Assembly: GCA_024704765.1 (NCBI GenBank)
Contig: JAKMXF010000221.1
Span: 558,001-622,000 of the forward strand
Length of the DNA: 64,000 nt
Source of the DNA: Oopsacas minuta
Taxonomy: Eukaryota; Animalia; Porifera
Direction: 5' to 3'
Part shown: positions 2,680-31,549 of the stretch, piece by piece
How the letters are laid out: each line of letters opens with the position of its first letter
Numbering within the stretch: position 1 is the first letter of the stretch
Notes under the pieces: generated by a model
What the model was told of the DNA's origin: nothing
Databases searched by the model: none
Seen by the model: only the letters and a program-made list of their open reading frames with translations
Translations under genes and position numbers: made by a program

Positions 2680-2715
2680 GTATAGTGGCTCGGTTCTAGA
2701 ATGGTTGACTTAGTT

Positions 2716-7300: not shown

Positions 7301-7493
7301 AAGTCAACCCTCGCTATATCTAACACGGATATATTGAAAATGCGCGCTTATAAAATTTGAGATCATGCGGACCCCCTGCTGTCCTCCGTGGACTACCAAG
7401 GGGTCCATGGAGCGAGGTTGCCTTGGCAAAATATCAAAAACTTACCTTCCTAAACCGTAGTGCTCCTTTCTTAAAAGACAAATATCCCTCCAT
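4379..7493 (-). CDS. PH + IRS-type PTB adaptor protein (DOK/IRS/FRS2-like), ~605 aa
   Basis: Exons 7493-7446 (MEGYLSFKKG..), 7274-6995 (PH domain, KNYWFVL...WVAEIREA) and 5868-4379, all GT-AG and in phase. PTB-like segment ILSWRLSQIISF..FSFSICPKC..SGRF, followed by a long S/P-rich tail with many tyrosines (e.g. YQIP, YSHP). Confidence 0.75.
5895..6070 (+). repeat. Dispersed repeat family B (DINE-1/HINE-like)
   Basis: AACTGGTAAGAGCTACAAACTT.AAATTT...CTGAGATAGGTG.CAAAATGT..GACCTATCAGATTTGAGGG. Long copies at 58649-58795, 62877-63025 and 62101-62203 (inverted). Short 3' fragments near 175, 8545, 20518, 31015, 46875 and 47270. Confidence 0.7.
6665..6955. repeat. Dispersed repeat family C copy (in DOK-like intron 2)
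   Basis: Aligns by eye to 2716-3055 along its length. Confidence 0.7.
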
Positions 7494-9896
7494 TACAACT
7501 CAGCTTTCAATTAGAATTTGCATTGCCATTCAATTCAATGTATTTATACTGAATGGCAGAGCCACTATTCGATCGACAGACGGTTGTGCATGAATGTGGA
7601 TTCTTGAGTGACTATTGTAAGTATTTGGAGATAAACAAACCTGCTACGTGGTAAACAAAAACATTTTGAAATGTCGCTAGGAAACAATAATATGTTTTCA
7701 AATATTGATTCCAAATAAATAATAAACACGAGTAATCAAAAAATGGGAAGTTATTCTCAGATTAGGTGAATTTAAAGAATTGAGCTCTTAGGGACAGCTA
7801 GAGGGGGCGATAAATGAGACCCCTACAGGGCATGTTGTCCCATTTACTACAAATTTCCCACAAGTTGGAACATAAACTTTTTACCTAGATTTGATAGTAT
7901 TTCTAGGTGTGAAAATTCTAATTAATAGTTGTATCAAGTGTGCATTTTACGCGCGTAAAAGCGGGCTATTAATGTAGAAGGCGCTATTGTCCGTCTTCCA
8001 AGTTCCCCACATCAATCCTATTTTGTAACTGTAATGTCTGAAGTAAGTTAAGATTTCTTCCTGAAACCGATTATAAATAGAAACAAACAAAAGCAGAATG
8101 ACAACACGTATTCAAGGATCAGTTTAATCCACAAAACCGATTGTTTCGACAAGAAGCAATACATACCAATTGCAGGAACATATCTCCAAGCAATTAATTG
8201 AAGTTAGTATTCTTCCAAGGATATTAGAACTTAAACAATACTGCAACACATGTATAATAGTATAATTATTTGTAAATTGAATTTAGCTTGGAAATATGTT
8301 GCCATCTATGAAGCCGCCACTTCAAGTGCCATTTCTGGGATTACATACCGTTCCTAAAGGGTTTTCTGTACGTTTATATGATTTTAACACCCAACACCTT
8401 TGTATCTACATGTTATACATATGTCGCTGGATAGAGTTTCCCATAAAACTGCATTTCCCCTAAACCAATCAAATTACAGTCTCAGTAGGCATTACGAGTA
8501 CAAACTTTTAACAAATAGAATACCAGCCTGCTGTGCTTGGGCTAACCTTCAAATCTGATAGGTCGACAAATGTGCCTATTGTAAGCTAAAAGCGGTCCGA
8601 TCGGGAATCCCACATCGAATGTATGGCCAGCTCGCCCCTGCCCTTGCCTCTTCGCTATGAGATTTCCTGTCATCCCCAGTGGTCCCAAACTAAACGCCAA
8701 CAGTATTAGTCAGGTATACATAAGTGTAATCTCACAAGAATACCGTAATCATCCAGACAAGCCTACCTCCTCAATTGATACATAGCTGTGCTTTGCAATA
8801 AATATTGCTGATATTGAAATATAATACCGAACATTAGTATGAAAATATTCCACCTTAGAGTACTACTTGTACCAGCTATGAATGCTTTGAATCAAATGTA
8901 TTTGAGATAACTCAAATATGGGCGCGGCTAATGCATCGATTGGTTTCAAATAACTCACTTAGGAAGTAATTGGTGTATTATATTTCTCTACGCAATACTA
9001 TTAAGTAATTAGAAGTAGTAAAGTTTAATGACGTCATCCATCTAGCAGTAATTAATATAAAACGTAGTTCAGGATAAGAAAGTTCGTTCCCCATGGGGAC
9101 GAGGGCTCCCTATGCCAATTTTAACACATTCTATAGGCCCCCTGCTGTCGTCCGTGAACCACTAAGGGGTCTGTGGGGAACCGCTGAGTTATACCATGGA
9201 TACTGAATGGACAAAGAAATTTCCAATTTTTCATGGCATTAATTTCAAAAAGACTATGGATAAGATACTTTCAATTTCCTTTCAAGTTTCACTTATATCT
9301 CATATTTAGTCACCTTTTCTAGTCCAAAAGTATATTTACAGTAATTCGAAATGTGTCGATGAATCTGTGACACAATTTAGCGTAGTTATGTGGCCACTAG
9401 TAGATTAATATCTTTAGAATTGTGTCGCAGTCGTAAGAGCAATTACCCTCCTAGACGATTATCTACCATGTTGCACACAATTTATGTTATAGGAAGCTAG
9501 TTACACCACATTCTTCAGTATAGCATAGTTACAATTACTTCCTTTGGTTCCAGTTTGCATATATAACACAAAATGAATAATGATCGTTCAAATTATGGAA
9601 TATGCTTATAGACCAATCAGATTGTAGGGTGTGTAAGCTTGAAGTTGGTCTAATTACTACGTGGTTTTACACACAAATAGCTTGCATTTTATTGGTCAAT
9701 TTCAACCAATCAGTTTCAATCTTTAATAACCACAAATCCGACGGATAATTTGATAGATAAATTAGTTAAGAGGTGCAAATAGACCAACTCATGTAACCTC
9801 ACCCCCTAGGCGTGTTCAGAGGTCAAACCCACAAGTATGATACATAAAATCTTTAGGAAATAGACATCAAAATGGTTCATACACATTTCAAAATAA

Positions 9897-11339
9897 CTAA
9901 CATTTAAACCAGTTCTTAACACGCTTACAGAAACAACTTGGAAAGAGAATAATAAATATTATAAGAAATGTACCTCTAAAAAGTAAAGTAGCAAATAATG
10001 TGTACCAAAATGGGACTGTATCATTAGCCAGGCTGAGAATTGAGTCACAGGTGGACAGATCGCCTATATTATTGTCTCGGTACACGATTTGATTGGAACC
10101 AGAACTATTAATAGTGACTGGACTATTAATAGTAACACAAATAATGTAATCACGAATATGTCTGAAATATGTGCGCTCTGATACAAGGAGGATAACGAAA
10201 CTAATACCAATGGTGATAAAAGCGGAGCTCATAAAGATCGAAAATAGCAATAGCCTCTTTTCTAATTCGCTCAAAACGAGTTTGCGGTCTGTAAGATTCG
10301 CAGATTTAAGCGATTGTATTCTCAATTTCGTTAGTACGATGACAAGCGTAGTTAGCATGAGTCCCGAAATCACAGAATAGAGCCACAATTCCAGAATATT
10401 AAATAAATAAAAGTTACTAACGATGATCTGAGAAACCTGATTGTTAATCATAAACGGGCTATCGGGATCAACCCAAAATATGACACCTATCATGACCAAT
10501 GGGAGGCCAAAAGAGACCACCATCTCAACCAAGAATAGGGTCAGATCCCTTTTGAGCACGTGAGTAAACCGAATTGACAATAAAAGTACGAAAAGAATAT
10601 TCAAAAACGAGAATGTTAACCAAGTGATTGTTGAAATAAAGAAGAAATAGAAAAGAGAGCCGAAAATTGTGGTCAGTAACTTCGAAGTGGGGTCTGTCAT
10701 CACCAGCCTGAACGCGTGTGCCACTAGGTACAACTCCCCTCTAGCTGACCTCTCACAAAACAATCCTTCGCGACCAACACTGTCCATAAGAATAAGAGTT
10801 ACGAAAACTCCCAAATCAGATAATATAACCATGGAGAGTGAAGTCCGGGATAAATTGAATTCCAACCTTTTCTTTGAATATTCTATATAACTTGTTACCA
10901 ACCAAAAGACCAGCGTCCCAATACTCAATAGCACCCCTAACGACGCGAATATCAGCGATATTACTCGTACTATAAATGGAGAATTTATCTCCAGGGGGTC
11001 CCAATCACACGCAGGGTAACAAACAAGTTGTTTTGGTTCATAAACGAATCCATATTGGCAGTTTACAGATGTGATTGAGTAGTTAGCAGCGCTGGTGTTA
11101 AGAGGGGGTATTTCCTCTGTGATGGAGGTCTCGTTAGAGGGCCTGGAATTCTCAATAATTTGGAAAATAAATCCTATGGAAGGAACGAATGAAATAAACC
11201 ATATGATTAACATACTTAACAAACAGATTGCTATGTAAACAAATTTGATTGAAAATATGTGACTCTTAGTGGCAGGGTTTGTGTCGGTTTTGCGTTTCAT
11301 TTCTAACAAGTCTGAATTACTCGCACTTTTGGAATCCAT
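9897..11339 (-). CDS. Frizzled/Smoothened-like (class F-like) 7TM receptor without CRD, 480 aa, intronless
   Basis: N-terminal hydrophobic segment, short N-glycosylated ectodomain with C..C.P.C linker, then seven TM segments. Frizzled-like motifs GREGLFC, LFYFFFISTITW and FGLPLVM. The tail has KRVKNW in the KTxxxW position. Confidence 0.65.
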   Translation of the reverse strand: MDSKSASNSDLLEMKRKTDTNPATKSHIFSIKFVYIAICLLSMLIIWFISFVPSIGFIFQIIENSRPSNETSITEEIPPLNTSAANYSITSVNCQYGFVYEPKQLVCYPACDWDPLEINSPFIVRVISLIFASLGVLLSIGTLVFWLVTSYIEYSKKRLEFNLSRTSLSMVILSDLGVFVTLILMDSVGREGLFCERSARGELYLVAHAFRLVMTDPTSKLLTTIFGSLFYFFFISTITWLTFSFLNILFVLLLSIRFTHVLKRDLTLFLVEMVVSFGLPLVMIGVIFWVDPDSPFMINNQVSQIIVSNFYLFNILELWLYSVISGLMLTTLVIVLTKLRIQSLKSANLTDRKLVLSELEKRLLLFSIFMSSAFITIGISFVILLVSERTYFRHIRDYIICVTINSPVTINSSGSNQIVYRDNNIGDLSTCDSILSLANDTVPFWYTLFATLLFRGTFLIIFIILFPSCFCKRVKNWFKC

Positions 11340-12129
11340 TCAACAAACAAATAATCAACAAACAATAAACGAATAATATTCAAATGTAATTTTATACTAA
11401 AAGAATCACAGAAGGCTAATTAGGTTAATAACCCAATCAGCTGATAATAATTGTACTAGCATTAACACATTCTTATATGGAATTCCTAAGACAGGATTTG
11501 GTTGCATTCAGTAATATATCACGTCTGTAATTTGTATGTAAAATAGATTAGCAGTTCAATGACAAGTCTCCAACCAAGCTACTTATACCTCAGCTCGGGG
11601 ACTTGCAAAAAGTGTCAAAATATTATTAAATATCCATTTTCGATATTTGCAAATGTTAGAATCGAATTCTACGCACACGATTACCCCGGACTAACAGCTG
11701 AAACGAAGTCTCTAGCATCATTTTGAAATATTGGTCAAAAAGGTGTGAAAATATGATTCATCATCTGATAAATAAATACATATACATCCTACACACTTCA
11801 ACAACCAATAGAATGTAAGAGTTATAAATTGTGAACCGCCTACAATCTGATTGGTCTAACTATAACCACCAAAAATGTGTCCGATATTCACTTTCATACT
11901 GAGGACACATTTGAAGTGGCACACGTATCCCTATCCCGCCGATTTTAACCGCCAATACCCCTCTAAATTCAAGCGGTAATTGAATTAGTGTCAACTACAT
12001 GTAATTAAAATATCCTCCTATAAAACAAACAAACAAATAAACAAGAACAAACAAGGATTAATTACATAACACCTCTCATATATATCCTCATAACAACAAG
12101 TTATAACTAATAATACTTACTGGAGTACC

Positions 12130-12750
12130 TCATTGTGTCATCTGAGCGCCACTACTCTGAATTATAGATATTATGACACCAAATAGCCCAATTGCACTGC
12201 CGAATATCTCAATTATCAAGATACGCACGAAGAGTGCCCCGTTTTGCGCGTCAGCCAGTGCGGCCCCTGATCCCACTTGTCCGACACAAATCCCACAGGC
12301 CAGGTTCGTGAAGCCGACGGTCAGCCCAGCGCCGAATATTGAATACCCCGCGAACAGCTGTGTCCTGTAGTAGTCTTCGTTATTTGCGGCCTTATCGAGG
12401 TTATAAAGTTGTATTTTGTTACTGAGCACAATTGCCATTATAATTCCATATATGGCTACAGCCTCACAGAAAATTATACTAATTAAGTTTCTTGTACGGA
12501 TCCTTGGCGCCTTAACACCCCCTCCAAGGATACTGGACCCTGTCAGGAATATCCCCCACGCGGCCCCGATTACCGAGATGGAGATGGCAATCCCGACACC
12601 TACACCGGCCCAGAGGTAAGGGGAAATAGAGAGCAAGACCCATCCGATATCCACGCGGTATCCATATCCAGCTAGATTGTAGTAGAGGGCAACTATTAGT
12701 AGAGCAGAGATAGCTGTGTAGTAGGAAGCTTGATAGGGAAGAGAGTACAT
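12130..12750 (-). CDS. ATP6V0B: V-type ATPase 21 kDa proteolipid subunit c'' (Vma16)
   Basis: Diagnostic [21 protein letters not shown] and [15 protein letters not shown]; five TM segments; intronless. Confidence 0.97.
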
Positions 12751-13626
12751 ATTGTGTCTAATAGGGGAACAAGTAGGGAACTGTTAAGAGGGGGTAATAA
12801 TGGTCTCCTTGGGGTTAATAGCACATGAGACCTCTGGGGGTGCGGTATAGCCTCCCCCTAGAACTTTTACATAAGTAACTGACATACTTAAGTCTGCCAT
12901 TTAAAAGTGTCGCCTGCCATATAATATCAAACACATTTTTTTGTCAGTTCTTAAATGGTGTTCTCCCAAGGACAGAAATTTGTCCAATTTAGCTCTACCC
13001 AAAGAGAAATCAAGAACAAGACCCACGGCCAAATGTCCTCTCTATAAACTAATGAAAACGACACTGCTACTAATCTAATTAAAGAAGTAAACAATCTATA
13101 GATTGTAAACAATATGAATATTGAGAACAGGCTAGCCATTTATATGAGAATATATTGGCTTCTCTGAAGTTCAGATGGTGTCCGATATTAAATGGCTTAT
13201 AATATAATAGAATAGCCAATTGTGTTAATTGTATTCATGTGGACCATGGATAACTTACATGATGATAACTCGAGGAAGAAATAGGGGGTTATTGCCCCTT
13301 GGGGATTCGCATTTTGTGGTGGCCTCAATACCACTAAGCCTGCTACGCCACTGTCACTGAACAAAAAATGGGACCACATTCCGACAGTTTGGATAAGTAG
13401 CAGGGCGCTAAAATGCGCCAAAATATTCATAAACATTGAGGAATTAATTAAATCTTTAGACACAAAGACAGTTCATATCGTGACATCACTACTGGTCCTA
13501 TTACTATGATAGACGTACACAAACGAAACAAACAAATAAACAAATAAACAAACGTGACTTCTGGAAAAGTAGATCAGTTAGTAATAAAAGTAGATAAATT
13601 TGTTTCCAAGTGAGAATGATTGACTT

Positions 13627-15261
13627 TTATTTGAAGGAACTGGAATTTGAAATGGCCTCTTCAAGTGGGGAACATTGGTCCTTTGGGGTACAAGCTTTGC
13701 TAAAAACGTTCCAGAAGCGGAGTGTCTCATCGCCCGCACCGGTCACGATCGTTTGACCGTCCGGTGAGAGGGACAAGTACAAAACTCGGTTTGCATGTCC
13801 GGTCAGCTTGGCTACTTGTAGGAGAGAGGGATATCTCCAAATTAAAATCTCATTTTGTGAGAAACCATGTGTGGACACAATTTCCTGGCTATGAAGAGAC
13901 CAACACAAATTACAGACCTGTGATCCTGTGTCGATGTGGTTGAGTTGTTGACCTGTTGTCACATTCCAGAACCGGATTGTCTTATCCTGTGTTCCTCCTC
14001 CTGTAGCAAGGAGACCATATTGATGAGGAGACCACGCGATAGCTTTGATCGCGGCCCGATGTTCCACGAATTTGTGCACAGGAGCAAAGCTGTGCTCGTT
14101 CCATATAAGTAGTCGGTTATCATTGCCCCCTGAGGCTAGGTGCATTTTATCAGCTGACCATCTCAGACCGCAGACCTCTTGCGTGTGGAAATTGAGTTGC
14201 CGGACGGGACCTTCCCCCGATGAGGCTCGTGTGTCCCATTGGCATATAGATTTATCTCTACTACCGGAACATACAGTCGTGTTCTTCCATGCAAGGCTGC
14301 TTACCCGCTCAATGTGTCGGATATAGTTTGCCACGCGTTGATTTGTCTGTACATCCCAAATACTAACAATCCCCGTACGTGTACCCACACACAGAGAAGT
14401 ACCGGTCTCAGCCCAACCCACCGAAGTGACACAATCCCCTTCCGACTGGAAATCGTGCAGTTTGTTTACCTGGCTGTTAGCAGCATTCCATAGATACACA
14501 GACGTTCCTAAGCCAACCGCCAGCATATTAGAGGAGGACCAGTCCAAGAGGTTGAGGTAGTAATCGTCCTGAAGTTCAGGGGCGTCTAACACCTTGAAGG
14601 GGGTCTTAGAGATCTTCCGGGTTACCCTCTTAGGGGAGAGGAGCAGTTTTTGTGAGGAGGGTGTGAGGGGAGACAGGGAGGACGCTGTAGGACAGAAACC
14701 AGAACTAGGACGGGATAAACTGGACCTGAATTGTAAGATGGAAGGAGAGGACTGCTTTCTAGAGGGAGACATACCACACTTCCCATCTGTACTCTGTGAT
14801 AGGGTCATGGGGAGATCAGTTATGTCCGATCCTAAAATCTCATTCCTGAGGAGACACGAGTAGGTGACAGCTTCTTTATGGGACTCAGGGGAGGGTTCAC
14901 GGGGCTGTGAGCTAGATGGTGTAGCGGTCTGTTTTTGAGCGGAGTGTGATTCGTTCTCTGTGATCCCCAAGATGCTCGAAAGGATCGGTCGTGACCTGAC
15001 CGGGATAAAACGATCGCCGGAGACCGGTCGCTTCGAGGGGGACAATTCGGGAGGGGACAGGTTCAAGTTCCGCCGTATCGTGGGAGGCGTGTTAAAAAGG
15101 GTACTATGGGTCCGTTTACCAAGAGACGAGGGTCTATGAGGAGTCCTACTTTTCATTCTAGGTGTGAGAGGGGAGGAGGGGGGTGTGATAATTTTAGTTC
15201 CCCTCAAACTAAGCCTACGTTCGTACAATGGGTCCATTAGATTATCATTATAGAGAATCAA
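13627..15261 (-). CDS. FZR1: Fizzy-related APC/C co-activator Cdh1
   Basis: C-box DRFIPVR; QKLLLSPKRVTRKISKTPFKVLDAPELQDDYYLNLLDWS; WD40 repeats ending WRYPSL...GAGDETLRFWNVFSK, as in FZR1; intronless. Confidence 0.95.
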   Translation of the reverse strand: MILYNDNLMDPLYERRLSLRGTKIITPPSSPLTPRMKSRTPHRPSSLGKRTHSTLFNTPPTIRRNLNLSPPELSPSKRPVSGDRFIPVRSRPILSSILGITENESHSAQKQTATPSSSQPREPSPESHKEAVTYSCLLRNEILGSDITDLPMTLSQSTDGKCGMSPSRKQSSPSILQFRSSLSRPSSGFCPTASSLSPLTPSSQKLLLSPKRVTRKISKTPFKVLDAPELQDDYYLNLLDWSSSNMLAVGLGTSVYLWNAANSQVNKLHDFQSEGDCVTSVGWAETGTSLCVGTRTGIVSIWDVQTNQRVANYIRHIERVSSLAWKNTTVCSGSRDKSICQWDTRASSGEGPVRQLNFHTQEVCGLRWSADKMHLASGGNDNRLLIWNEHSFAPVHKFVEHRAAIKAIAWSPHQYGLLATGGGTQDKTIRFWNVTTGQQLNHIDTGSQVCNLCWSLHSQEIVSTHGFSQNEILIWRYPSLLQVAKLTGHANRVLYLSLSPDGQTIVTGAGDETLRFWNVFSKACTPKDQCSPLEEAISNSSSFK

Positions 15262-15862
15262 CCAATCAATTTGCTAGCTTTATGAATATTTATAGAAAAA
15301 ATGAATTCATTGTTTACGAAGTGTTGAGGCAAAACAAACAATAATATAATTAAGAAGGTGTGAAAAGTGGCATTTATGTATTGAAAAGTGTCCGATGAGG
15401 CAGTTTAGACACTAAACAACTGGCAGATGTTATTCTTTGACAGCTCTTTATAAAGTGGGATTATGTCACCTCGAAATGTGCCACCAAGTTGAATTGTCAG
15501 TTTTCCGTTCTGCCACTTAATGCAAGGTGTGAAGATTCCATTTCATAAAGCCGAACACCACATACTCTCTGGAGATATAGAAATATGACTCAAATAAGGA
15601 ATAGTGCCTTAGAATTGAAACCAATGAAGCGTTACTGTTGTCCATTGTATTCATATGTGTATAAATATTGGTTGCAATTTGGAAGTGATGTGACTCTATG
15701 GTCCAGTTGGTCAAGTTTCAACAAGTGCAAGTTTTGCAAAAAGGGTACGAATTTAGAGATGGACCAATCTGACCAATTTCGCTCCCTTTGGCTTGAGCTG
15801 AAAGGTGTTATTTCGAATTCTAGGAAGCCAAAACGAATTTATGTGGGAAGTAAATTCGTATA

Positions 15863-16734: not shown

Positions 16735-19700
16735 TCAAAAATATTGTGGAATGTCTTGCTGGTAGAATTCACGGGTCTGTGGGATTGGGAAATCAGTGTT
16801 GTATTGATAGGTGAGATCTTGTTCCGGGTGATAATATGGTATCTAAGGAATGTGTATATTATTTTAAATACGTGGTTATCAACACCTTTTCACCCGTGGA
16901 CCCTCTATGCCAATTTTAACACCTTCTGTTGATCCCTCCATTAAATACAAAATTTTGAGATCCTGTGTGGACTCCAGATTGGGAAAGGTGTGAAAATGGA
17001 GTTAGTCTAGGGAAGGCTTCCCAGATTGTGGCACACGGACAATTGCAAGTGGCACATATCACAGGACAGTGGCTCATTCAGGCACCCGTCTATGCTACCC
17101 AAAAAGGTGTGAAAATATGATTAATCTTAACTTACTTGCATAGGTTGTGAATTCATTTCATAATAGCTCTGTTTATCCGGATAGAATAGTGATGGTGTCA
17201 TTCTAGAATCAGGAAACCCATGTGTATGTGATATATGTTGATTTTGCTAAAAAGTAAACAATAATAACATGGTTGTGTTTATACAAACATGAAGAAGCGG
17301 GGTAGTTCCAAGTATTAACACTTCATGGTTCCAGTTCCAAAAATACTCACCTGCATTGGGACACAATTTCCGTAATAATCCATTTGTTGTTCTTGAATGT
17401 GTCCATAATTGTTGCCAGGGTTGTAGAAGGCTAACCCGGGGTCATCTGACATGTTGTAGTAATCAAGATCACCAATCTATACAAGTAAATAAGTAAATAT
17501 CAACACGGTAGTCTGTTTGTTTGTTTGTTTGTTTGTTTGTTTGTTTGTTTGTTTGTTTGTTTGTTTGTTTGCTTGTTTGCTTGTTTGTTTGTTTGTTTGT
17601 TTGTTTGATTGTTTGATTGTTTGTTTGTTTGTTTGTTTGTTTGCTTGTTTGCTTGCTTGTTGGTTAGTTTATTAGTTTGTTTACTTGTTTGTTTGTTTAA
17701 CTAACCGGTGTAACATTTCGAGGAGCTGTTGGGATATTAGCAGGAATAGTATCCATCAATCCGCCACTAATAATCTTGTTACCATCATAGTTTCTGAATT
17801 CATTAAATTTATGCAATGTCATAGTTACATATGCTTCTATATTCTCATCTTGACACCTCTGTAAGAGTTTAACTAACATATCAGAGCAGTTGGCTCTCTC
17901 CATTTCTTGCATATTGAACTGGTCCCCCGATAATTCGCAGAGACAGGCCACGGCATGTTCAAGTACCCTCTTGCGATCAGAAAACAACAACTAAAAAGGA
18001 ATAAACACAAATAATAACAATTTAAACAAAATGGGTCCAATTTGTATTGTCTTTATTCTAATACATTATGTGGACCCCCAGCTGTTGTTCGTGGATCACC
18101 ATTGACCTCATATGACCGCTATACTGTACATAACACCTAGCAATTAACAGGGGGACATGAGGACAGGGGATCAAACTTACCCGAATAATAACTGGTATAC
18201 TATCGTGTTTTCCAATTAGATTTCTATTAACGTGATCTTTTGCTAGAACCTCAACTGTTGATAATATTAGTACCAACACGTCTTCCATGTTCACACCTTC
18301 TTGTGTCGTCGTGTTGCCATGTTCTGTTGTCTAAATATATATAAACACATATAAAACAACTCCAAAAGGTGTTATATTATTCATATGAATATAAACACAC
18401 CTTGAATAGTATTTCAATTGCTCTTCGGAGGAGTTCTACCAGTTGTGGAATTACGGATAATTTCCTAAGTTCGATTCTGTTATGAGTGCTGATTGAGAGA
18501 TTCCGTAGAAGTCCTAAACAAGCCTAAATATATATAAACATAAATAGGAACAACAAATGGATAATAGCATATTTGTAAAATATGGGTCGAGAGGGCAACT
18601 TGAGTTCCTGTTGGGTCCAATTACTCTGAATGGCCGTTGGGATCAGATATCGAAAGGTATGAAATATGAATAATCGCTAACGGGTGTCAATATGCTGATT
18701 TTGCAAGATCGCACTGACGGAGCATTCCATGATATTTCTATGACAACGCAACTTACAAAAGAATGTGGATTATTACCTTAATTAGTGTCCAATGAGTTGT
18801 ATTCAAGAAAAGTTGCAAAATCACGTCCAGGCCTTTTTGCTCTCTAACCTCATTCTGGGCGAAATCTTCCCTCTCATGTTTGGAGGTAACGTGCCTCAGG
18901 GTGCAAATAACTGCCTCTAAGAGCTCATTTATCTGTGGCGAGTTGATGTTTATGTCCCGCTTTTGTGAGAATTCCAGAACAATATACAGAAGTATGTGTA
19001 TACCGTTATGATTACAAATTGCAGTCTACAAATGACAAATAATTGATAATCAGCAAACATATGTCTAAAGTGTTTGATGTTTGTAGTAGGTTAGGAAGCC
19101 AATGGGGGTCAATGAAGATACCAGAAAAATACCCTTTTTTGAATTGAACCTAATGATAATACTTGCTCTGCTATTCATTATTTAGACTTTGTTAAAGAAC
19201 ACTTGTAACTTTCCTGGAATAGCAACTGCTATCGTGGCAAGATCTAGCAAGCACATTCTTGTCTTTTCGGATAGGAAAATGCATTCATTAACAGTCAACT
19301 CGCGTTATAACGGAGCTAAAGGGACCGCGATAATCACTTGGATATGACCGATGGAATATACGTTACTTTGGGATCATATTTGTAGAATTTAAGACTTCGG
19401 TATATCCGTGTTGGGTGTAACGGGAGTTGACTGTTACTATCAATCTTACAATTATTCAAAATAATCTAAGTAAATTCCTTAAATTCCAACTGTAACCATT
19501 GTTACCGCCCCAATTCTGGCGCTCAATAATGAGACAACATTCCAATGATGTGCTCTATAGCAACAAATAATTATTGAATCCCTCCCATTTGATTTTCTAA
19601 TTTGTCTATTGCAATGAATTTTTGTGTTTGTATCATTTTGCTAGGAATTATTGTGTATACCCCGCCCATTCAAGTCAGAAAGATTATGTAGGAGTGATTA

Positions 19701-22700
19701 CAGCAAAACGTATATGTAAATATTAGCAATTTGATATCTTGCTTTATTTCCCGATTTCCTGGGATAATTAGTAAGGAATTATTTTATTTAATCATATCCT
19801 ATACGCTGACGTTATATACAAGCTTTCCTAGTTACCACGATGGTGTTATGTCATGCTGCTAGGCGGGCGGGGGATTAATCATGAGGCATATTTGCCACCT
19901 CCCCGGGAAAATATTTCTGGATATTTTGGAGGTGAAATAGGGGGAAACATTAGGAGAATATTCAAAATTCAGAGATTTATGAAGGAAATTGTTTAAGGTG
20001 TTGGTAAGCATGAAGAGCAGTGGCGGTCCCAGCGTGAGGGCATTAGCCACCGGCATAGCCAGATCCTCAGACCATCACTCCCCATTACATATTAAGACAA
20101 GCAAAAATACTGGCACCGCCCCTGATGAAGAGAGAGGGGTCTGTTACTCACCTTATTAATGGGATTATTGCAAGTAATATTGGATAATATTCCTACAATG
20201 TACATCATACTAGTTGTATCTTCCTTCATTCGTAATAGATTCAATAGCATAGCTATTAACGACTCCAAATTATCCTACAAACAAATAAACATAAATACAT
20301 TCCACATACACTTCTCGTTGCTATGATAAATAGATTGGAATGTTAACTAACCTCTGGTCTAACTACATCAGATAGTGTCAGTAAGGGACGGAGATACAGC
20401 TGGACAATACGAGGACTGTTACTCGTGAGGTGTTTGGAGAGTATAGGAATCCCACCAGCCTATATTTGGATAATTGAATTAAGTAATTAAGTATGGAAAT
20501 GTGACGAAATGTGTCGACCTATCAGATTTGAGGGTTTATAGACTGATATTCTATTGGTTGAATAGCTTATACACATTTTAACACCTAAACTGACACTGTC
20601 TAATGGACTAGCTTACTTGTACGATAGCTTGCTTATGGTTCGGACAAGTAGTGAGGACTTTTATCAATCTTCCAACAATCCAAATTAACTTCTCAAAATT
20701 ACTGTCAGCTAGGATTTTCACAAGTAACACAGATCCGTTATAGTTGTATATTATTTGTTTTGTTTCTTCATTATTTATTGCCAGTAAATGTAAACAATCT
20801 GCTATGATAGCTAATACTCTCTCTCTGTGTCCGTTTAATAATCTGACTAGATGCTGTACTCCTCCTATGATAGTAAATTGTTTATTTATCTGTTTACTTG
20901 TGTGCGTATTTGTTTGTATATTTGTTTACTTGTTTGTTTATTTGTTTGCATAATTGTTTACTTGTTTGCTTATTTGCTTGTTTGTGTATTTGTATGTTGT
21001 TTATTTGTATTTTTGTACATTTGCTTATGTATTTATTTGTTTACTTGTCTGCTTATTCGTTTGTTTATTTGTTTATTATATACTTAACAACAAACCTCTA
21101 TTCCTGAATTCCTCCATATACACGCTGGCATTGTGACGACATCCTAGCATATTGTGTAAACACGTAATTGCAAATACAATGACATGCTCAACATCTGATG
21201 TCAACAACAACATCTAAATCAAAGAATAATAAAGACATTCATCTGAGTAATATCACAAAATTCCATAGCAACAAGAATATACCATAGTTATGTCAAACGC
21301 GTTTCAAACATTCAACACTAGATGTGATAAATAAAACTTACGATAAAAGCTAGTCCATCGCATGTGTGGATCATTTTCACGCCCAGTGGATTAACAGAGA
21401 GGGAGCTTATGGCACTAGACGAGTATTTGGCCGCTTCATCGTTAACATTGTGCCCAATAGCTTGTATCAGAGCTGTGAGGACAAGGGGAGTGGAGAGGAG
21501 AGCATTTCTAGAGGCCTCTTTCTTCGCCAAGGTGGCAATAACCTATACACATATTGATAATCATACAAAGAACTTTGTATTAATGTATTCTTGATATAGT
21601 GTGGAATTCATGGATATGATTTGGTGGTGGCAAGTTGCAGGAAAGTGTTTCATTGTGTCATATCAAAATTGTGTCGCTCTAACCAACAATTCCATACTCA
21701 CAATGAAATCAGACAAAACTAAAGGCGAAAACTTTCAAGACAAATTATGTAAATACACTTAATTCGCACTCAACAAATAACAATACAGTAACATAGCTAA
21801 TTCAATTATAGTTCTATCATCCTAGCAAAAAAGATATGAAAAATTACTGGAATCCCAAAGCGATAATTATGTCATCTTTTCAAGTTCATAATACAATCAA
21901 ATTGGCTTTATACAAATTATGTGGTGGAAAGGAATTCAACTTACCAATGACGCTTTTTCTATGATTTCTCTGTTGGTGTCTTTTAGCACTTTTAGTAGTT
22001 CTGGAATTACTTGTGTAGTAATCTCTGTGTCTGTCTATAGTAAGATATATGATAAGATATATATGAGACAACAAATCCGCTACAGACGGGAGGGAACTTT
22101 TGGAACGGAGTTGGTCTCAGACAAATGAAACTCCACAAATTAAAGAAAGGGAGACAGTTTGTACCTCAATATACAATTAAAGGACAAAAGTAATCGACCA
22201 TTTTAGGATTGCAAATATTTCGTGTTCTTATACATTAATATCCGTCAATCTCCATAAATGAATCTTGTTCACACGGTAAGTGGTCGAATACTTTTATCCT
22301 TTAACTTTATATATCTCTATACTAGGAGAATACAATTGGAACTGGAACTTAATTAGTAAACTTCATATTCCAAGAAATGAATCTTGTTTAACTCAATATT
22401 AGACAGCATAGAAGCCGGAGCATTGATATAAGGTTTTGTAGTCAAATAAGCCACCTTTTGTCAAAATGAATACAAACATATGGCACTTATATAGTCAAAT
22501 CAAATTCCATGAAAGAAACTAACAACACAGCCCAGTTTGAATTCTTGAAAATGAATATACAAAATTCGAACTTTGTTATCAGAAAATTACAAGTGTTTAG
22601 GAGCTCTGGTTTCTAAGGAAAACTTTGGAAATATGTATCCTTATTCTAACAGTTATATGCCTACCTTGTAGAGAAGGAGGTTTGTAATGGATTTTTTTAT

Positions 22701-24337
22701 TGCCTGTGATGATCTTGTCAACCGTTGGACATTTGTTTGGTGATCTGTGGGCGTCGATGCACAGTTCCTGTCCGAGTGAGACTCTGTGAATAAGGCAGAT
22801 TTTAATCTCTCCCCCTGTCCGTTTGTCCTCTTCGACCCCAAATTAGCTAAAAACAAACAAACAAGTAAACAGAATTCAGGTTTGATAATTCAATCAATGA
22901 ATCCTGAAAATTGAACTTTCTTTGATTAGATAATACTCAAATTTGATTGGTTAAGATGATTACAGCGTGACCAATCAAATCAGAGTAACTTACCAATCAG
23001 CTGATAAACACAAATGACCAGATTGTGTAATATAAATAAATAAATATTCCTCACTTTTTGACCCGTTATAGGGCTGGTGCCATACCCCTTGGACCGCTTG
23101 GTCCCATGCGTACACAACTGGACCATCAACATTGTCCTCATCGTCATCAAATCTTGGGCTGGCGGATCGGGTAACAATCCCGGAATCATGGGTTACTGGT
23201 TCTGATTGAAATTTGTCCATTACTTCTGAAGGTGCTAAAAATATATCATAAAATATGTTGTTGTCTATTCGTACTTTTACTCGGTAGCGTGGATACACAG
23301 TTGGACTTAAGGAATGTTCCGATTTATCTAATTTTAATAAATTCAGAAATGTAGGATTCGACTACAAAAATATATTTAAAATTCGGCTTGCAATTATTCT
23401 GTTTTTATATACATAAAATGCATTCAAAGTAAACCCCGAACTATAAAGGAACTTTATGAAACTAAAAACACAATAAAATACAGTAGAATCTCCGCAATAA
23501 GGCCACAGGTGCATCGGGTTACTTCTCCAGAAATGGAAGCATAGATATAATTCCACATTACAAAATGTGATGGTAGCGATGTAAGCGGACTCTGCATTGG
23601 TATAAGAAATAATCACAGATTACAACTTGAAACGTAGAAATAACAAAAGTGACAGGTAAAGAAATCGGGTCAAATTTATTTCTAACCAAAACATGACCGA
23701 TATAATTGTTCTTTTCAGGAAAAGCTGACACAAATTTTTCTTATGGCCTGCGCCATGTTTTGCGGCCAAATCGATATAATTGGAAATCAGAATTGCAGAG
23801 ATATTCCATCGAACAGACCGCAGTGTATTGTTAACATAATTACTGTGTATTATGCTCTGCAGATATGAAACCGTTACTAATTAGTGCTCAACTTGCAACT
23901 TTGCATTTTAAGTCAAATGGAAATGGAAATGTGAATACTGGCAAGAGGGTCAATTTATAGTTCCGGATCGATGGTTTAATTAGGGTATTTGGGGGCAATT
24001 ATTGGAGAAACATAATTTGTAAAATATGGAAACAAATTTGAGTTCTTAAAAGTGGAAAATTCGAATTCAAAATTTTGTTAAAATGCAACACAAAAAAGTT
24101 TGTTCATTTTTGTTAGTTTGTTTATTATTGTTTGTTGTTTGTTTATTAGTACAAATTTAATTCAACCTACAAATATTACACCCAAAAATATCAAAATTTC
24201 TGTAAAATCGTGTGAAATAATAAACAACAAAAAACTCACAATTATTAGTCCTGTGTGGAGAATACTGTCTTGAAGATGTGAAGTGGAATTGTCTGATATT
24301 ATCCTCGATTTGAGATAATCTCAGTTCGTAATCTCTC
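16735..24337 (-). CDS. CTNNB1: Divergent beta-catenin (armadillo), at least 15 exons, ~796 aa from this point
   Basis: Phase-consistent GT-AG exons: 24337-24240, 23234-23055 (DSGIVT degron), 22846-22665 (TNVQRLTRSSQ), 22034-21945, 21542-21342 (KKEASRNAL), 21213-21096, 20864-20617, 20459-20352, 20274-20152 (GILSNITCNN), 19025-18777 (LRHVTSKH..AQNEVR), 18523-18401, 18330-18181 (EGVNMEDV), 17990-17706, 17476-17351, 16842-16735. Collinear with human beta-catenin over all ARM repeats. The first and last listed exons are less certain. Confidence 0.9.
17514..17697. repeat. (GTTT)n microsatellite with GCTT/GATT variants
   Basis: About 185 bp tract abutting the donor site at 17705 of a beta-catenin intron. 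Confidence 0.95.
19291..19434. mobile_element. Tc1/mariner-type MITE, TA-flanked
   Basis: TIRs ACAGTCAACTCGCGTTA / TAACGGGAGTTGACTGT; TA at 19289-19290 and 19435-19436. Relatives at about 39410-39530 and 47400-47543. Confidence 0.8.
20018..20124. mobile_element. hAT-type MITE (107 bp) with perfect 8-bp TSD
   Basis: TIRs CAGTGGCGGTCCCAG / CTGGCACCGCCCCTG; identical flanks ATGAAGAG at 20010-20017 and 20125-20132. Confidence 0.9.
20878..21075. repeat. Degenerate (GTTT/ATTT)n tract filling a beta-catenin intron
   Basis: Imperfect TTTG/TTTA repeats between exons 21213-21096 and 20864-20617. They generate the spurious CLFVCLF-type ORFs in the track. Confidence 0.9.
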
Positions 24338-24375
24338 CTATAGATATGCAACAGATTATTAAATATGTTCTATAA

Positions 24376-24383
<8 letters not shown>

Positions 24384-24422
<39 letters not shown>
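24384..24422. repeat. (TA)n microsatellite
   Basis: Uninterrupted TA run. Confidence 0.95.
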
Positions 24423-24423
<1 letters not shown>

Positions 24424-26290
24424 TGCTGCTGCTGTTACCTATCGTAACTGGCATAAGATACACAGTGGACAAGTTGGGCCATTATTTAAATATAGTCCTG
24501 TTGTTATAATGGTTACTCAATCGGTATCACTCCGATTAATAAGAACCCCCCCTCCCCCTGATAAAGCGAATATATTTTGAACGTCAGTTGGTGTTCGTAT
24601 TAACGATTTTAGGCGGGTAATAGCATATTATTAATAATCGGCGCAAAAGAAAATTCGGAAGTATTCTCTGACGCTTTAAGCGGGAAATGAAGCTTAACAT
24701 ACGTAGAAACAGGTTTGTGGATTTTAAGCGGGCAATTATCATTTTATCAAGTTTTAAGCGGGAAATAAAGGATGCCTAACTTTGATAAAAGTAATATCGA
24801 TAAAAATAGGCGGTTAATAACAAAATTCCAGTTTGTTTATTACATACATTGTTGTGTGAAAATTAGAAACACGGTAAATAATAGGGACATCATAGTTCCA
24901 AACTCGAGACTAACCAATACACTGAATGCCCTGAAGGCTTGTAAATTGCATAAATTGGAATTGAAACTATTTTCTAATATTTCATAAACACAAAATTGAC
25001 CTCAAAATAATCTAAGAAAGGAATGTAATTGTGAAGGAAATATTCATACAAAGAATAAACAAAAATTGTATGTGTTTGTATTTATTTGAATAGCTTATAT
25101 TGTGAAGATGGTAATAGGCGCTCAATTATGGATATCACACAATATATTCTATCGGAATATGAAGAGAAATGTATTAGAATATTGTTTACGTAGGCGCGTA
25201 TTCCAAAATATTTTCAATTTGTAAATAATAGCAATCTGTGTATGCTAAAGTTTATATGAAATAAACACTAATAAGTTTGAAGATTTTAAACCCTGTGTCA
25301 CTCAATGAAACCTGTCACCATGTGTATACTGGCTGAAGTGGCGTGAAGTGGCACAATGTGTCAGGAGTTGAAAATATTTAGACTTAACAGTAGGATTTGC
25401 TATTTTAAACAAATTGTATTGGAAACATACCTACGTGCACATGTTACCAGAGGGAGTATACCTCACCCGAGTTCTACTGTATTCTACAGATTAAATACCC
25501 AATGGGGAGTGATGGTTTGTACCAACAATCTGGAGTGCGGACAGAGGGAGGGACAATCAAGAATAGAACAAGTTAAACCTCAAAAGTGCAATGAGTTTCA
25601 GCTTATTAATATTACAAATAATATCATAATATTATGACTTAAGGCAGGTGGATAATTGAACAATAACATCTGGAAAAGGAGGAGACAAGTGATCACAATT
25701 ACGAAAATTACAAGTTCATCTGTGGGTATATTGTTTGTGGTGTAGCTAACCAGAACCTTACCCCAATTACATTGCATAATACAGTCAGTATATAATTCAC
25801 ACTCTGACCCACTTCACAAGTACTACAAATATGAAAAAGCATAATTGGAGTTAATTGCCTTCCACTGATCAAAATATTAATCTTCTGATTAAAATTAGAT
25901 ACGCGTTAACAATGAATCTGACTTGTTATGTGGTTCGAACATAAAAACCCACGGACTGCAATATATTCCAACAGCTGAATTGTACATTACGTATTCGGAA
26001 TAATTCAGAATCACCTAATGAACTACGCTATCATCTTTCTTTCTTGTTTTACCTAGAGATTCTTGTTCTAAGTTTCCAAGAAGTAACGCAATCATGGAGA
26101 GGGAGTGTAAAGAGAATGCGTAAAATTAAATGAACAATAAACACAAACACGTGTTCATAGGAATGTTACGATAGTTTAATAATTATTCAAAGCTAATTCA
26201 AATTTGAAAATATCACTGTTGCACCCGAATAGTTCAATATTCTGTTACCAAACGAATATCAGTATTGGGTTAAGCAAATATTCATGAATA

Positions 26291-26526
26291 CCGTAAACGG
26301 GGGCTACTTTGGGCCACTGGGTTTGCTTTAGCCCAAATATGAAAGCTCCAAAGAAACTAGATTGGATTCAGTATTGTACTTGAAATGACTTACCAAGTTT
26401 TTAACGAGTTTCCAAATATCGGTAGACAGTTTCGAATACAAATACAATATCTATTCGATACGTAAGCAAATTTTAATATTTGGGCTAAAGCAAACCCAGG
26501 GGGCCAAAGTAGCCCCCAGTTTACGG
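26291..26526. mobile_element. Tc1/mariner (Tigger-like) MITE with ~50 bp TIRs, TA TSD
   Basis: CCGTAAACGGGGGCTACTTTGG..CTGGGTTTGCTTTAGCCCAAATAT and its reverse complement at the right end; TA at 26289-26290 and 26527-26528. Confidence 0.9.
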
Positions 26527-28585
26527 TACTGATATTCGGTTCGATCGGTTTCAACCTTGGAAATGATATAAAATTGAGAGATAAACATAAATAAATCTAC
26601 ATTTTCATTTAAACTTTGGAGTCTTCCAGCTGGCATGAAAATCAAATCAAATCCGTATGTATTAATAAAAAATCAGCACCCATTGCTTAATATAATTTTC
26701 AGTTTAAAGCTAATACTATTTATGATACAATAATTGAGGACAACAGGTAGGAAACTAGGAGGAGCTATGGTCGCAATGACATAAGGACAATTGAAAGTCT
26801 AATCCACAAACTCGTTAAAATAATCAAGAAAATACTTGTGTACCAGGCATGTTGTTAGGTTGGTTATAGTACATTGTTGAAGGTTCATTATTTTGGTAAA
26901 AAACATATTTCTCTTGAGAATTCGGAAATCGTCAAATTGTATGAAAGACTGTGACCAGGTTTTAACGACGCTACATGCGGTATTATTTGCAAACCCTAAT
27001 GTCACCCAACATTATAGTTCTGATAGAAATACGTCGTGTTAATTAATAAAGTGCTAAATATAGAAATAAGAAATGAGTGGTAGATATTGGCAATGAAAAG
27101 TTTGTTTATTATTGTTGTTTACTGTCACGAATATGTAACAATATTCAAGCAGGGAAAATGAAAAACCACGGAGGCTTGTCCAAACGCTCCATCTCACAAA
27201 ATACCAAATAAGCAAATACCTTAATCTACTTAGTACCAATTACCAGATCGATTACAAGATATTGAGTAATGATAATGTATACGTGAATATCCATTAGCCT
27301 ACCAACCAGGTGCTGTATAATATAAACAAAGAGTATTGGACTAGAATTATGCACAGATAGTTAACAAATTAAGGGAAGGGCCGCCCTAGAATAGTACTAA
27401 AATGTATATATGCAAAAAGGGTCTCTTCTCAATTCTGAATATTATTGAAAGTTTGTGGAATTGATTCTCATTATTTGCAATTAAAATATTTGAACGAATA
27501 AACAATTCAGGGATTAAGTTCAAGCGTATGTCAAAGTGTTAAGTGTTACATTACATCAAAATTGGGTAATTAGGACGACCAGACCGGGAGTTAATTAGAT
27601 TATAATTTGTACTTGGAAGAGTGGTATTAAGAGAGGAAACAGACAACAATCTGATTGGCTAGCTACTGCTTAATTGGTATAATTATAAGTGTCAAATCCA
27701 TTAATTGTCCTATTTCTGTCTAGCAACACTCAAGGAAGATAGGAATTTCAAATACGAGGCTGAATGTAATGGAACTTCTAGTCGTATACATATTTTCATA
27801 TTGGCACGCTGTATGAATGGAAAAATGCTCCAACTTCCTTATTTTGTCATTTTCTAGAGTAAATACGAACACTTATGTTATGAAACTGAATCTGTAATAA
27901 AAATCAATTTTAGTTCCAACGCGCGCTCATTCTAAGACAAAACTAATTAGCGCAGTTGTTTATACTTAACACCATCAGTTTCAAGTGATGATTGCACATA
28001 TCAACATACTCTTTGAATAGCACATTCCTGTGTTGTCAAGGAGAATTTTTTCGTGTTTTGGCTAAGTTGTTGAATAGTTCTTTCAAAGAAGACGTATTAA
28101 CGGCCAATCTCATTTTCGGTGACGTAACTTCTGCAATAATTACTTTGCCTCAAAAGAATAATTCTCGAATTGTTAATGAGAATTCTCAGCAGAGTTAACG
28201 AAACTATAATACTTGATATTTATCTGGCTAATACAAGTCTAAGAGTGTCAAAATCTGATATTTCGAGGTTAACCTAGACGTATCTTACGTTAAAATAGAA
28301 CACGTGTAATGTATTATACGTTATACGCGTATTATACAGCTGAAGTTTAGGACAATTCAGAAATGGAATAAATATTGCAGGAAAAGACTTACAGTGTATA
28401 CTGGTTATAAGAACACCCTTGGGAGTAGCAATACATGCTCTTATAACCGGTATAATATAAAGAAATATGTGAGAACCGTTTTCCAGAGGATGGTGCTTAT
28501 ATCCGGTGTGTATATATACACATCTTGTTTTTAAAATAAACAAACAAACAAACAAACAAACAAACAAACACACAATCAAATTTAC

Positions 28586-28691
28586 CTGTTGTACGGGTCA
28601 GTATCAATACCAGCAAGCGTGATGGCCTTCTCCTCATGGAGCCGCTGAAGAAGTTGTCGAGCCGTCATTCTAGTTCGATCGTAGTCAAATT
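28586..28691 (-). CDS. Coding exon, probably an upstream exon of the beta-catenin gene
   Basis: Clean acceptor TTTACAG and donor AG|GTAAAT. Open frame FDYDRTRMTARQLLQRLHEEKAITLAGIDTDPYN. The phase-2 end matches the phase-2 start of exon 24337. The start codon exon was not found. Confidence 0.5.
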
Positions 28692-28957
28692 CTGTAAAGT
28701 CAATAGTTATGTATTATTCAATAAACTTCTATGTTCTATATATACTATAGTGACACCCCATGACAAACCATGAATAGGCGAGAACATTCCATAGATAGAA
28801 TTTTCAAAAGGGGGTAACCGTGATCAGACTTGATCAAAGATGTCGGCCTGAGTGTGATCATCAAAAAACTCAAAATTTATCAGTAATTTAATAACTACCG
28901 TGTGAATAATAATGATCTTATCTTCATAGACGGAGACCTTCCCCCGTAATCAACACC

Positions 28958-29640
28958 TAAGACCGACAAGTATTTGGAAAAATAATTATGTAAACAACAA
29001 ACAAACAAACAAACAATCAATCAATCAAACAAACTATTTTAAGTAATTTCGTCTAGAAACATTCCTCTCTCTTTTTATTTCTTTCTCTTGGGTTATTCAA
29101 AGAAACATGGTTCATACGTAATCACAAACTGTGCCGATTTTTCTGACAAATATTGAGGGCCAATGAGGCTAATATCCCGCCAGAAATTGCTTGCCCTGTA
29201 TTATTATTGTCCAGTTTAATATATAATAATGATTTATCTTCACAGACGGAGACCTTCCCTAATTCACGGAACGGATCGGACAAGTTTTCTGAAGAAAATT
29301 CAAATTAGTTGCCTTGTAAATCACAGAACATTATAAACAGGACGGGACATAAGGTACTAACCTAGCGGACATCGAGGGACGTTGCATATTTGTATTAAAC
29401 TGGACAATAATAATTCAGGGCAAGCAATTTCTGGCGGGATATTAGCCTCATTGGCCCTCAATATTTGTCAGAAAAATCGGCACAGTTTGTGATTACGTAT
29501 GAACCATGTTTCTTTGAATAACCCAAGAGAAAGAAATAAAAAGAGAGAGGAATGTTTCTAGACGAAATTACTTAAAATAGTTTGTTTGATTGTTTGTTTG
29601 TTGTTTACATAATTATTTTTCCAAATACTTATTGGTCTTA
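28958..29640. repeat. Long near-perfect inverted repeat (arms 28958-29221 and 29393-29640, 171 bp spacer)
   Basis: The arms are reverse complements apart from a few substitutions and the length of an AAAC/AATC microsatellite. Confidence 0.95.
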
Positions 29641-29731
29641 CGGGTGGGGCGATTCTTCCTCCCACGATCTCCCTTCCTTTCTCTCTAATTAAGAACTATA
29701 ATATAATTATACGTTTAGTTCTAGTTACTAA

Positions 29732-31549
29732 ATGGACGGTGCATTTAGAGCTGAATTCCAAACATCTTTTTTCCGGGACAGAGAGGACGCGTATCAGACC
29801 TATCTCCCCCCTCCCTCTCACTCGTACCGCTCCCGAAGCCTCAGTAGAAGGACACGAAGCACCGAGAAACTCCATTGGCATCGTAAGACATCCACGCAAC
29901 ATCAAAGTCCACATACAACATATAGAGAGACCACTGGGAGTAGCTTTCACAGTCGCAGGCACAAAAGACATAGTAACGGACGGTCACAGAGGGGGAAAAG
30001 TGGGGAACGTAGGAAGAGGAGGCAACGGTCCCCTAAAGATGAACATCCAATCGAGGACGATAAAGATGGACACTTGATTTACTTCGCAGAGGACATATTA
30101 GACTCACGGTACATAATAATTGGTACCCTCGGGGAGGGGACTTTTGGGAAAGTGGCACACTGTCGACACAAATACACTGGCGAAGAAGTGGCAGTAAAAA
30201 TAATAAAGAATGTGGATAAATATCGGTACTCGGCTAAGATAGAAATTAGAATTTTAGAATCAATCTCAAAGGCTAGTGGAGAAGGGAAAAAGCTATGTGT
30301 CAAAATGCTGGACTGGTTCGATCACAACGGACATATTTGTATCGTATTTGAGTTGCTAGGTCTGAGCGTGTTTGATTTCCTAAAAGATAACGAATACGAA
30401 CCGTACACCCTGGAAACCGTCCGTGATATTTCATATCAGCTGATTAAATCAATAAAATTCTTACACGAACACAAACTCACACATACAGATTTGAAACCGG
30501 AAAATATTATGTTCGTGGAAACCGAATATACCGAAAGGGCTGGCAAGCGTGGGAAACGGCTAAACAGGACCCTCGTGAGTTCAGAAATAAGACTCATAGA
30601 TTTTGGGTCTGCTACTCATGATGACGAGCACCATTCTACTATTGTATCCACGAGACACTACAGAGGTCCAGAGGTGAGTATTACTTTAATTACTATTTGT
30701 ATATATCGCTTATAAGAGCATATTACCCCGCATAAAATACAGGAGTATATGTGAAACCTCGTGGTCTTATATCCGGTATATTCTTATAACCGTGTTCTTA
30801 TGAGCCATAGGATCCAATCTGTTTTCACCCGTGAACCCCTCCCATAGCCTGCAATACAAATTTGACCCCCAGCTGTCGTCCATCGACCCCAGGTTGGGAA
30901 CCCCTGTTATCATCAAAATCCACTGAATATAATTTATCACATTTGTATATTTAAACCAATCAAATTACAGCCTCGGATAGTAGGCATAACAACAGTACTG
31001 AATATCAGCTGTCTATAAACCCTCAAATCTGATTGGCCTAGTTTGTTACTATTAATAGTTAGGCCTATTGGTTTAGTTTTGTATTCTAAGGTTCTCCTCG
31101 AGTTGGGTTGGTCACACCCTTGCGACCTATGGAGTATCGGGACTATAATATTTGAGCTATACAAAGGTCACACATTATTTCAAACGCATGACAACCGTGA
31201 GCACCTAATCATGATGGAACGTATCCTTGGTCCTTTTCCTAGACGTATGATTGAGGGTACACGGAAGGGGAAATATTTTTTCAAGGGGCGGGTCGACTGG
31301 GACGATCGCTCTCCAGAGTCTAAATACGTCCGTGAACACTGCTACAACCTGAAGAGATATCAGATCGGTAAATCTCATGAAGAGGATCTCTTGTTTGACC
31401 TGATTGCTCGGCTACTTGAGTACCAGCCGGAGAAACGATTGACCGCGAATGAGGCCTTACAACACCCGTTTTTCTGCCCGTTACCCTCAGCGCTTCGCAG
31501 TGACTGTCGTAAGAACGAGACGAAATTAGTCGGTGACGTGTGGAGCTAA
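29732..31549 (+). CDS. CLK: CDC-like (LAMMER) dual-specificity kinase, 466 aa
   Basis: Exons 29732-30673 and 31091-31549. RS-rich N-terminus, LGEGTFGKV, HTDLKPEN, DFGSAT, STRHYRGPE, EHLIMMERILG. Confidence 0.95.

Follow-up and report, generated by a model that had tools for sequence, protein, structure and literature searches.

A glass-sponge variant of the beta-catenin degron that lacks the CK1-alpha-primed serine and may be started at a conserved Ser-Pro site

In vertebrate beta-catenin and Drosophila Armadillo the degron reads D32-S33-G-x-x-S37-x-x-x-T41-x-x-x-S45, S45 being the residue that CK1-alpha primes for the GSK3 relay. A survey published in 2024 found the GSK3 and CK1 sites kept in the animals compared, with the exception of Hydra, which is without S37 (PMC11613877). 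Among sponges, Ser33, Ser37, Thr41 and Ser45 are reported to be conserved in Ephydatia muelleri (bioRxiv 10.1101/164012), and the full motif has been reported in Amphimedon (PMC5684314). Glass sponges differ from this pattern, as described by Schenkelaars et al. (2017, Sci Rep; PMC5684314) from Oopsacas minuta (KU316199) and Aphrocallistes vastus. According to the accessible part of that article, to which our statements about it refer, glass-sponge beta-catenin is without the last phospho-site of the relay (their Supplementary Figure 4), and the motif is called divergent and counted among the signs that the Wnt pathway is non-functional. The same source reports that both species are without Wnt, Wntless, Dishevelled and Frizzled A, that the glass-sponge Axin is without a beta-catenin-binding region, that APC is truncated and GSK3 present, and that the domain compositions found in Axin, APC, TCF and FzdB are unusual (PMC5684314). 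The losses of Wnt-pathway genes were confirmed by the 2023 genome paper (PMC10280926).

Since the loss of Wnt, Wntless and Dishevelled is published, Wnt-independent turnover of beta-catenin, which had been put forward in an initial annotation of the DNA analysed here, is known background, dating from the reports of 2017 and 2023, and not a discovery. The missing fourth serine is likewise already in the literature. What appears to be new is minor and consists of an invariant Arg (-3) and Ser-Pro at position '41', an invariant Asp/Glu at position '45' and codon-level evidence of selection; the accessible part of Schenkelaars et al. (2017) carries no comment on the conserved R-x-x-S-P, on the Asp/Glu at 45 or on purifying selection.

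The window (the whole stretch of O. minuta DNA that was analysed, 64,000 nucleotides long) contains the beta-catenin gene on its minus strand. The protein P0151 (860 aa), annotated as 'beta-catenin [Oopsacas minuta]', maps onto the window exon by exon (tblastn); its armadillo-repeat block (PF00514 and related families) is found in stop-free minus-strand segments running from approximately 23.2 kb down to 16.7 kb, and one of the exons has PDB matches to chains of plakoglobin and beta-catenin (E 3e-21 to 1e-20). Four public runs, all from one sample, hold the locus. Three of them are DNA-like, with even depth over introns and exons, and one (X4) is RNA-like, with depths of 1660-9400 on exons and 0-45 on introns and with minus-strand joints, flanked by GT..AG, at 24240>23234, 21943>21540 and 21342>21213. 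The coding features of the gene are the following:

28586..28668, minus strand: first coding exon, with the start codon (MTARQ...) and a consensus AG/GTAAAT donor; 100% identical to P0151 residues 1-28 (tblastn)
24240..24337, minus strand: second exon, coding for residues about 29-61; X4 joint, open frame with no ATG, matching P0151
23055..23234, minus strand: third exon (the degron exon), 180 nt, residues 61-121; X4 joints, depth 5320
16735..22846, minus strand: remaining beta-catenin exons, with the armadillo repeats and the C-terminus ...IPQYF (tblastn with P0151)

The 5' border of the degron exon is given by the first of the RNA joints mentioned above and the 3' border by a contig joining 22846 to 23055, and X4 depth in the two flanking introns is 0-13. 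As for the first exon, an X4 contig has an 8-letter overhang upstream of 24337, the sole upstream match of which is at 28586, followed by the consensus donor. An ATG at 23220 was considered as the start codon and ruled out by the RNA joint, by the open frame over the two upstream exons and by P0151, with which the frame agrees all the way from the ATG at 28668, across the first and second exons, to the exon of the degron. Given the true start at 28668, the DSG corresponds to residues 77-79 and not 32-34; positions 33, 37, 41 and 45 are therefore used here as human-equivalent numbers counted from the DSG, the true residues being S78, T82, S86 and D90. The O. minuta beta-catenin gene is spliced and expressed, and its representation in RNA-like contigs excludes that this is an unexpressed copy. 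A single copy has been reported in this species (PMC5968619), and a word-index search with full-length P0151, in which 8000 candidates were scored, listed no second O. minuta protein. The PDZ-binding C-terminal end (DTDL-type) is not found in P0151, which ends in ...DIPQYF, in agreement with the previous report (PMC5684314).

Several repeats were observed in and around these exons. A long (TA)n microsatellite is located just upstream of the second exon (24368-24436), where the contigs of all runs break, and long microsatellites of the CAAA/CAAG type are present in beta-catenin introns at 17503-17700 and 20897-21040 (minus strand), giving rise to TNKQ runs and spurious long open frames. Within the 4.2-kb first intron, depth in the three DNA-like runs rises from around 100 to 5,600-34,600 at 26200-26600, and many loose contig ends are found inside this peak, at 26527 and 26559, which indicates a short, very high-copy genomic repeat.

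The degron peptide, DSGIVTRSASPRFDDDED, read from the sequence as D77-D94 of P0151 (23187-23134, minus strand), is identical in the window and in the annotated protein. The initial annotation had described it with no strand; the peptide is encoded as given there, and the +4 spacing, the Asp at +12 and the R-x-x-S-P at '41' were all confirmed (S78/T82/S86, D90 and R83-P87, respectively). Its elements, with codons listed for the four glass-sponge taxa compared below, are:

23134..23187, minus strand: codons of D77-D94, comprising the degron, the Ser-Pro site and the acidic run; conserved in the four taxa
23182..23184, minus strand: codon of S78 (human-equivalent S33), first Ser in the DSG beta-TrCP-type motif; invariant, TCC/TCT/TCA/TCC
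23170..23172, minus strand: codon of T82 (human-equivalent S37); invariant Thr, ACC/ACT/ACT/ACC
23155..23169, minus strand: R83-S84-A85-S86-P87, that is, R-x-x-S-P, S86 being human-equivalent T41
23146..23148, minus strand: codon of D90, at the human S45 position; GAT/GAG/GAG/GAA

A D-S-G-x-x-S/T motif of the beta-TrCP type is thus present (DSGIVT, residues 77-82), three acceptors of the GSK3 type (S78, T82 and S86) can be read at +4 spacing, and the Ser-Pro formed by S86 and P87, with T82 at -4, is invariant in the four taxa. The glass-sponge peptide shares with the vertebrate and Drosophila degrons its location ahead of the armadillo repeats, the DSG, the acceptors at +4 and +8 and, farther downstream, an acidic patch together with a Y-x-W-[DE]-Q element, and differs from them in having Asp/Glu at 45, Thr at 37, Arg at 38 and, next to the third acceptor, an invariant Pro on the C-terminal side, as well as an acidic-patch linker that is 7 residues shorter and around 45 extra N-terminal residues. 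Judging by its sequence, it is a homologue of the beta-catenin degron and not a chance match. At position 45, no Ser or Thr that CK1-alpha could prime was present in any of the four taxa, and no conserved Ser/Thr was found farther downstream in the linker in the glass-sponge alignment.

The four taxa, all of them Hexasterophora-type, were O. minuta, Vazella pourtalesii and those represented by assembly L001/L002/L008 and assembly L007/L009. The Vazella protein (P0003, 749 aa; EukProt EP00800, encoded by L004/L005) was found by an exhaustive representative search using the beta-catenin exon of the window, and a word search seeded with it led in turn to P0151; the genomic loci, which show the gene order of the window, were reached via the short exon-fragment proteins P0001, P0002, P0004, P0174 and P0177. 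Common to all four taxa is DSGIVTR[ST][AT]SP[RG]x[DE][DE]. Residue 84 varies between S and T and residue 85 between A and T, while R83, S86 and P87 are invariant and specified by synonymous codons (CGA/AGA, AGC/AGT and CCA/CCT, respectively); at the human S45 position, O. minuta has Asp and the three remaining taxa have Glu. Synonymous codons differ at 8 of the 9 invariant residues, and the linker flanking the degron varies among glass sponges. The combination of invariant residues with diverged synonymous codons shows purifying selection on the protein motif, the Arg at -3 and the Pro at +1 of S86 included, and not decay. Conservation of this kind means constraint, whatever the function constrained, and the conserved residues could be there for another partner.

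These data bear on the idea that the degron fell out of use when Wnt signalling was lost and is now a decaying relic, the loss of S45 being the first step. The losses of Wnt, Wls and Dvl, the odd domain make-up of Axin, APC, TCF and FzdB and the disappearance of the PDZ-binding end of beta-catenin itself would all fit such a scenario. However, DSGIVTR and the S-P have stayed invariant in four taxa despite synonymous divergence almost everywhere, with a variable linker on their flanks, and we consider the relic very improbable. The strong conservation, across the taxa sampled, of a degron from which the CK1 site is missing argues for a beta-catenin that in glass sponges is still actively destroyed upon a phosphorylation cue, which would be expected to act at one residue pair, S86-P87.

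For the comparison beyond glass sponges, the set of sequences came from the exhaustive representative search and from cluster names, because glass-sponge beta-catenin is too divergent for the word index: word-index searches with the Vazella N-terminus and with full-length P0151 gave 2 and 9 proteins, respectively, with no named non-glass sponge among them. Ser is present at 45 in 24 of the 37 full-length representatives having a DSG-type motif, and only the two glass sponges among those 37 have Ser-Pro at 41-42. A few other divergent sequences are also without Ser/Thr at 45, through indels, so that the loss is not unique among animals, and sequence comparison suggests that the CK1 site may have been lost on more than one occasion. 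Three divergent beta-catenin-like proteins (P0010, P0048 and P0143) have no Ser/Thr at 45 and show acidic residues soon after the third acceptor.

Within the same phylum, the orthologues of E. muelleri, Amphimedon queenslandica and Oscarella pearsei have four acceptors, whereas those of glass sponges have three. The four residues of O. pearsei are serines at +4 spacing with DTEDDD directly after them, so that in the position of the acidic patch, immediately following the relay, this species resembles glass sponges. An alignment of sponge N-termini had been suggested in the initial annotation, along with two findings that would speak against its proposal, namely a motif general in Wnt-competent sponges and a canonical second beta-catenin with this copy unexpressed. 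Neither applies at the level of sequence, because Ser45 is kept in Ephydatia, Amphimedon and Oscarella, the gene is expressed and a single copy has been reported.

How the CK1 site disappeared depends on the sequence chosen as comparator. When aligned with MAFFT to a bilaterian-type sequence, the glass-sponge peptide shows a deletion of 7 residues, with which the S45 segment is lost and the EEED-like acidic patch comes to adjoin the degron; against O. pearsei, a Ser-to-Asp substitution that needs no gap accounts for the sequence just as well. Because the two alignments disagree, the earlier statement that Asp replaces S45 is right in that the CK1 site is gone, but whether this came about by substitution or by deletion varies with the comparator. 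The gap that MAFFT requires here would suit a relay shortened by one four-residue step, in which CK1 primes S86, aided by the acidic cluster, and GSK3 then completes two steps. Linker indels are common in other lineages, some of which have an A-P-S-like block at 39-41 and not at 43-45, and the recognition of S45 by CK1 reportedly depends on the acidic cluster downstream, a dependence that would favour this scheme. On the other hand, S86 is followed by an invariant Pro, unlike the Leu-Ser context of S45, and Axin, which presents CK1-alpha to beta-catenin, is without its beta-catenin-binding region in glass sponges. Priming of S86 by CK1 therefore seems to us quite unlikely.

The reading towards which we lean is that glass-sponge beta-catenin contains a class-conserved variant of the beta-TrCP/GSK3 degron that dispenses with the CK1-alpha-primed serine and is started at S86-P87 by a proline-directed kinase. 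The preserved DSGxxT and the +4 spacing are the features that define the beta-TrCP site and the GSK3 relay. S86, in the invariant Ser-Pro, would be phosphorylated first, by a proline-directed member of the CMGC group (DYRK, CLK, CDK, MAPK or GSK3 itself); GSK3 would next phosphorylate T82 and S78, giving rise to the beta-TrCP binding site, and the Asp/Glu at +4 would more likely belong to the conserved acidic patch than act as a genuine phospho-mimic. Primed sites of this kind usually have their Ser-Pro four residues past the GSK3 acceptor. Known GSK3 substrates primed at Ser/Thr-Pro are eIF2B-epsilon, tau and NFAT, in which DYRK is the priming kinase, and c-Myc, primed by ERK; these CMGC-primed substrates and the glass-sponge degron are alike in having the priming Ser-Pro four residues C-terminal of the acceptor, and in several of them SCF-type degradation follows. 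We know of no beta-catenin that uses CMGC Ser-Pro priming.

With respect to the kinase, the consensus for DYRK is RPx(S/T)P. The Arg at -3 and the Pro at +1 of S86 fit this consensus, whereas the Pro at -2 is missing, so that the context favoured by DYRK or CLK kinases that had been proposed for this site holds in part, as a motif-level reading; the Arg at -3 would fit basophilic kinases as well. The priming kinases described for GSK3 are CK1, CK2, CDK5, MAPKs, PKA and DYRKs (PMC5954166; PMC13229842), and priming of the Ser-Pro by a proline-directed kinase is plausible from the sequence of the site. Human beta-catenin without S45 continues to undergo phosphorylation at 33/37/41 and degradation, although less efficiently (PMC7464804). 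The oncogenic S45 deletion and S45F forms are comparable to the glass-sponge protein in that the CK1 site is gone while some phosphorylation at 33/37/41 and some degradation persist (PMC7464804), but they are somatic and impaired in turnover, whereas the glass-sponge variant is evolutionarily fixed and conserved.

The initial annotation had also contemplated an acidic mimic. In such a scheme no priming kinase would be involved, the Asp/Glu at 45 standing for phospho-Ser45 and allowing GSK3 to phosphorylate S86, T82 and S78 constitutively. An acidic residue does occupy this position in 4/4 taxa, opening the acidic run, and two GSK3 substrates with Asp/Glu at +3/+4 have been discussed as possible cases (PMC5954166). 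However, the authors of that same review of GSK3 indicate, from their own experience, that peptide substrates are not primed by acidic residues (PMC5954166), which makes this the weaker branch of the earlier proposal and disfavours it. The acidic run, besides, lines up with the EEED-like patch that beta-catenins have in general, with or without S45. Our literature search turned up no study in which an acidic residue at 45 (S45D/S45E) was tested directly, all its matches corresponding to 'S45del'. Taken as a whole, constitutive phosphorylation through acidic mimicry seems decidedly unlikely.

Returning to a degron started at the Ser-Pro, a tentative and rather doubtful extension would be that, after the loss of Wnt, Wntless and Dishevelled, beta-catenin turnover was re-coupled by means of an R-x-x-S-P-primed, three-step degron, with a proline-directed CMGC kinase (DYRK, CLK, CDK or MAPK) replacing the Axin/CK1-alpha step. 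If this were true, it would represent a natural example of a swapped destruction-signal input. To our knowledge, glass sponges are the sole group of free-living animals reported to have a polarised body and no Wnt ligands. The comparison presented here offers a sharpened and testable hypothesis on the control of beta-catenin in a Wnt-less animal that has retained the beta-catenin/TCF pair.

The approximately 45 additional residues ahead of the degron of glass-sponge beta-catenins derive from two small exons (24240-24337 and 28586-28668 on the minus strand of the window, 1916-1999 and 5039-5194 in L007, and residues 1-46 of P0003). The extension includes the conserved block PYNR-x-x-YELRLSQIED-x-I-x-Q-x-HF, and the sequence of the second exon is conserved in L007 and in Vazella. 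In human beta-catenin just 31 residues precede the DSG. The presence of this conserved extension just upstream would be in line with the block having another function altogether, for example as a binding or phosphorylation site for another E3 ligase, a reader of the 14-3-3 type or a partner in cell junctions, and not as a GSK3/beta-TrCP degron. Nevertheless, it is exactly the residues defining beta-TrCP recognition and the +4 spacing of GSK3 that have been kept, and GSK3 is present in glass sponges; we deem such a function unlikely.

The gene located on the other side of the first exon, in divergent orientation, is:

29732..31549, plus strand: CLK (LAMMER) kinase, in blocks 29732-30712 and 31043-31549; Pfam Pkinase, PDB CLK2/CLK1, E 2e-82

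Its match to human CLK2 supports the identification as a CLK kinase made in the initial annotation. Beta-catenin and CLK are arranged head to head, their start codons being 1064 bp apart in the window (28668 to 29732) and around 616 bp apart in Vazella (L004 4763 to 5379), and the divergent order is found in Vazella (L004/L005) and in L007/L009 as well; both may be driven by one bidirectional promoter. They belong to a conserved block made up of ankyrin-repeat genes, CLK, beta-catenin, Cdc20 and V-ATPase c, with the same order across glass-sponge assemblies. Since the whole block is syntenic, the adjacency of CLK is not evidence for a kinase-substrate link, and a functional connection between CLK and beta-catenin, about which the initial annotation had speculated, was rejected on these grounds.

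Some additional observations were made on these loci. In Vazella-type sequences, P0002 (143 aa, beta-catenin exon sequence) occurs at least 4 times, at a spacing of 3.2-3.9 kb, on one metagenome contig (L003 3198-14383), and there is a partial inverted duplicate of the gene on L004/L006 (L004 about 9502-9705 and 20365-20162); these repeats and the inverted copy are either an assembly artefact or a true segmental duplication. The order beta-catenin, Cdc20/Fizzy and V-ATPase proteolipid (9900-15273 in the window, minus strand) is kept in L001, L002, L007 and L008, and L007/L009 has an additional amidohydrolase gene that separates beta-catenin from Cdc20.
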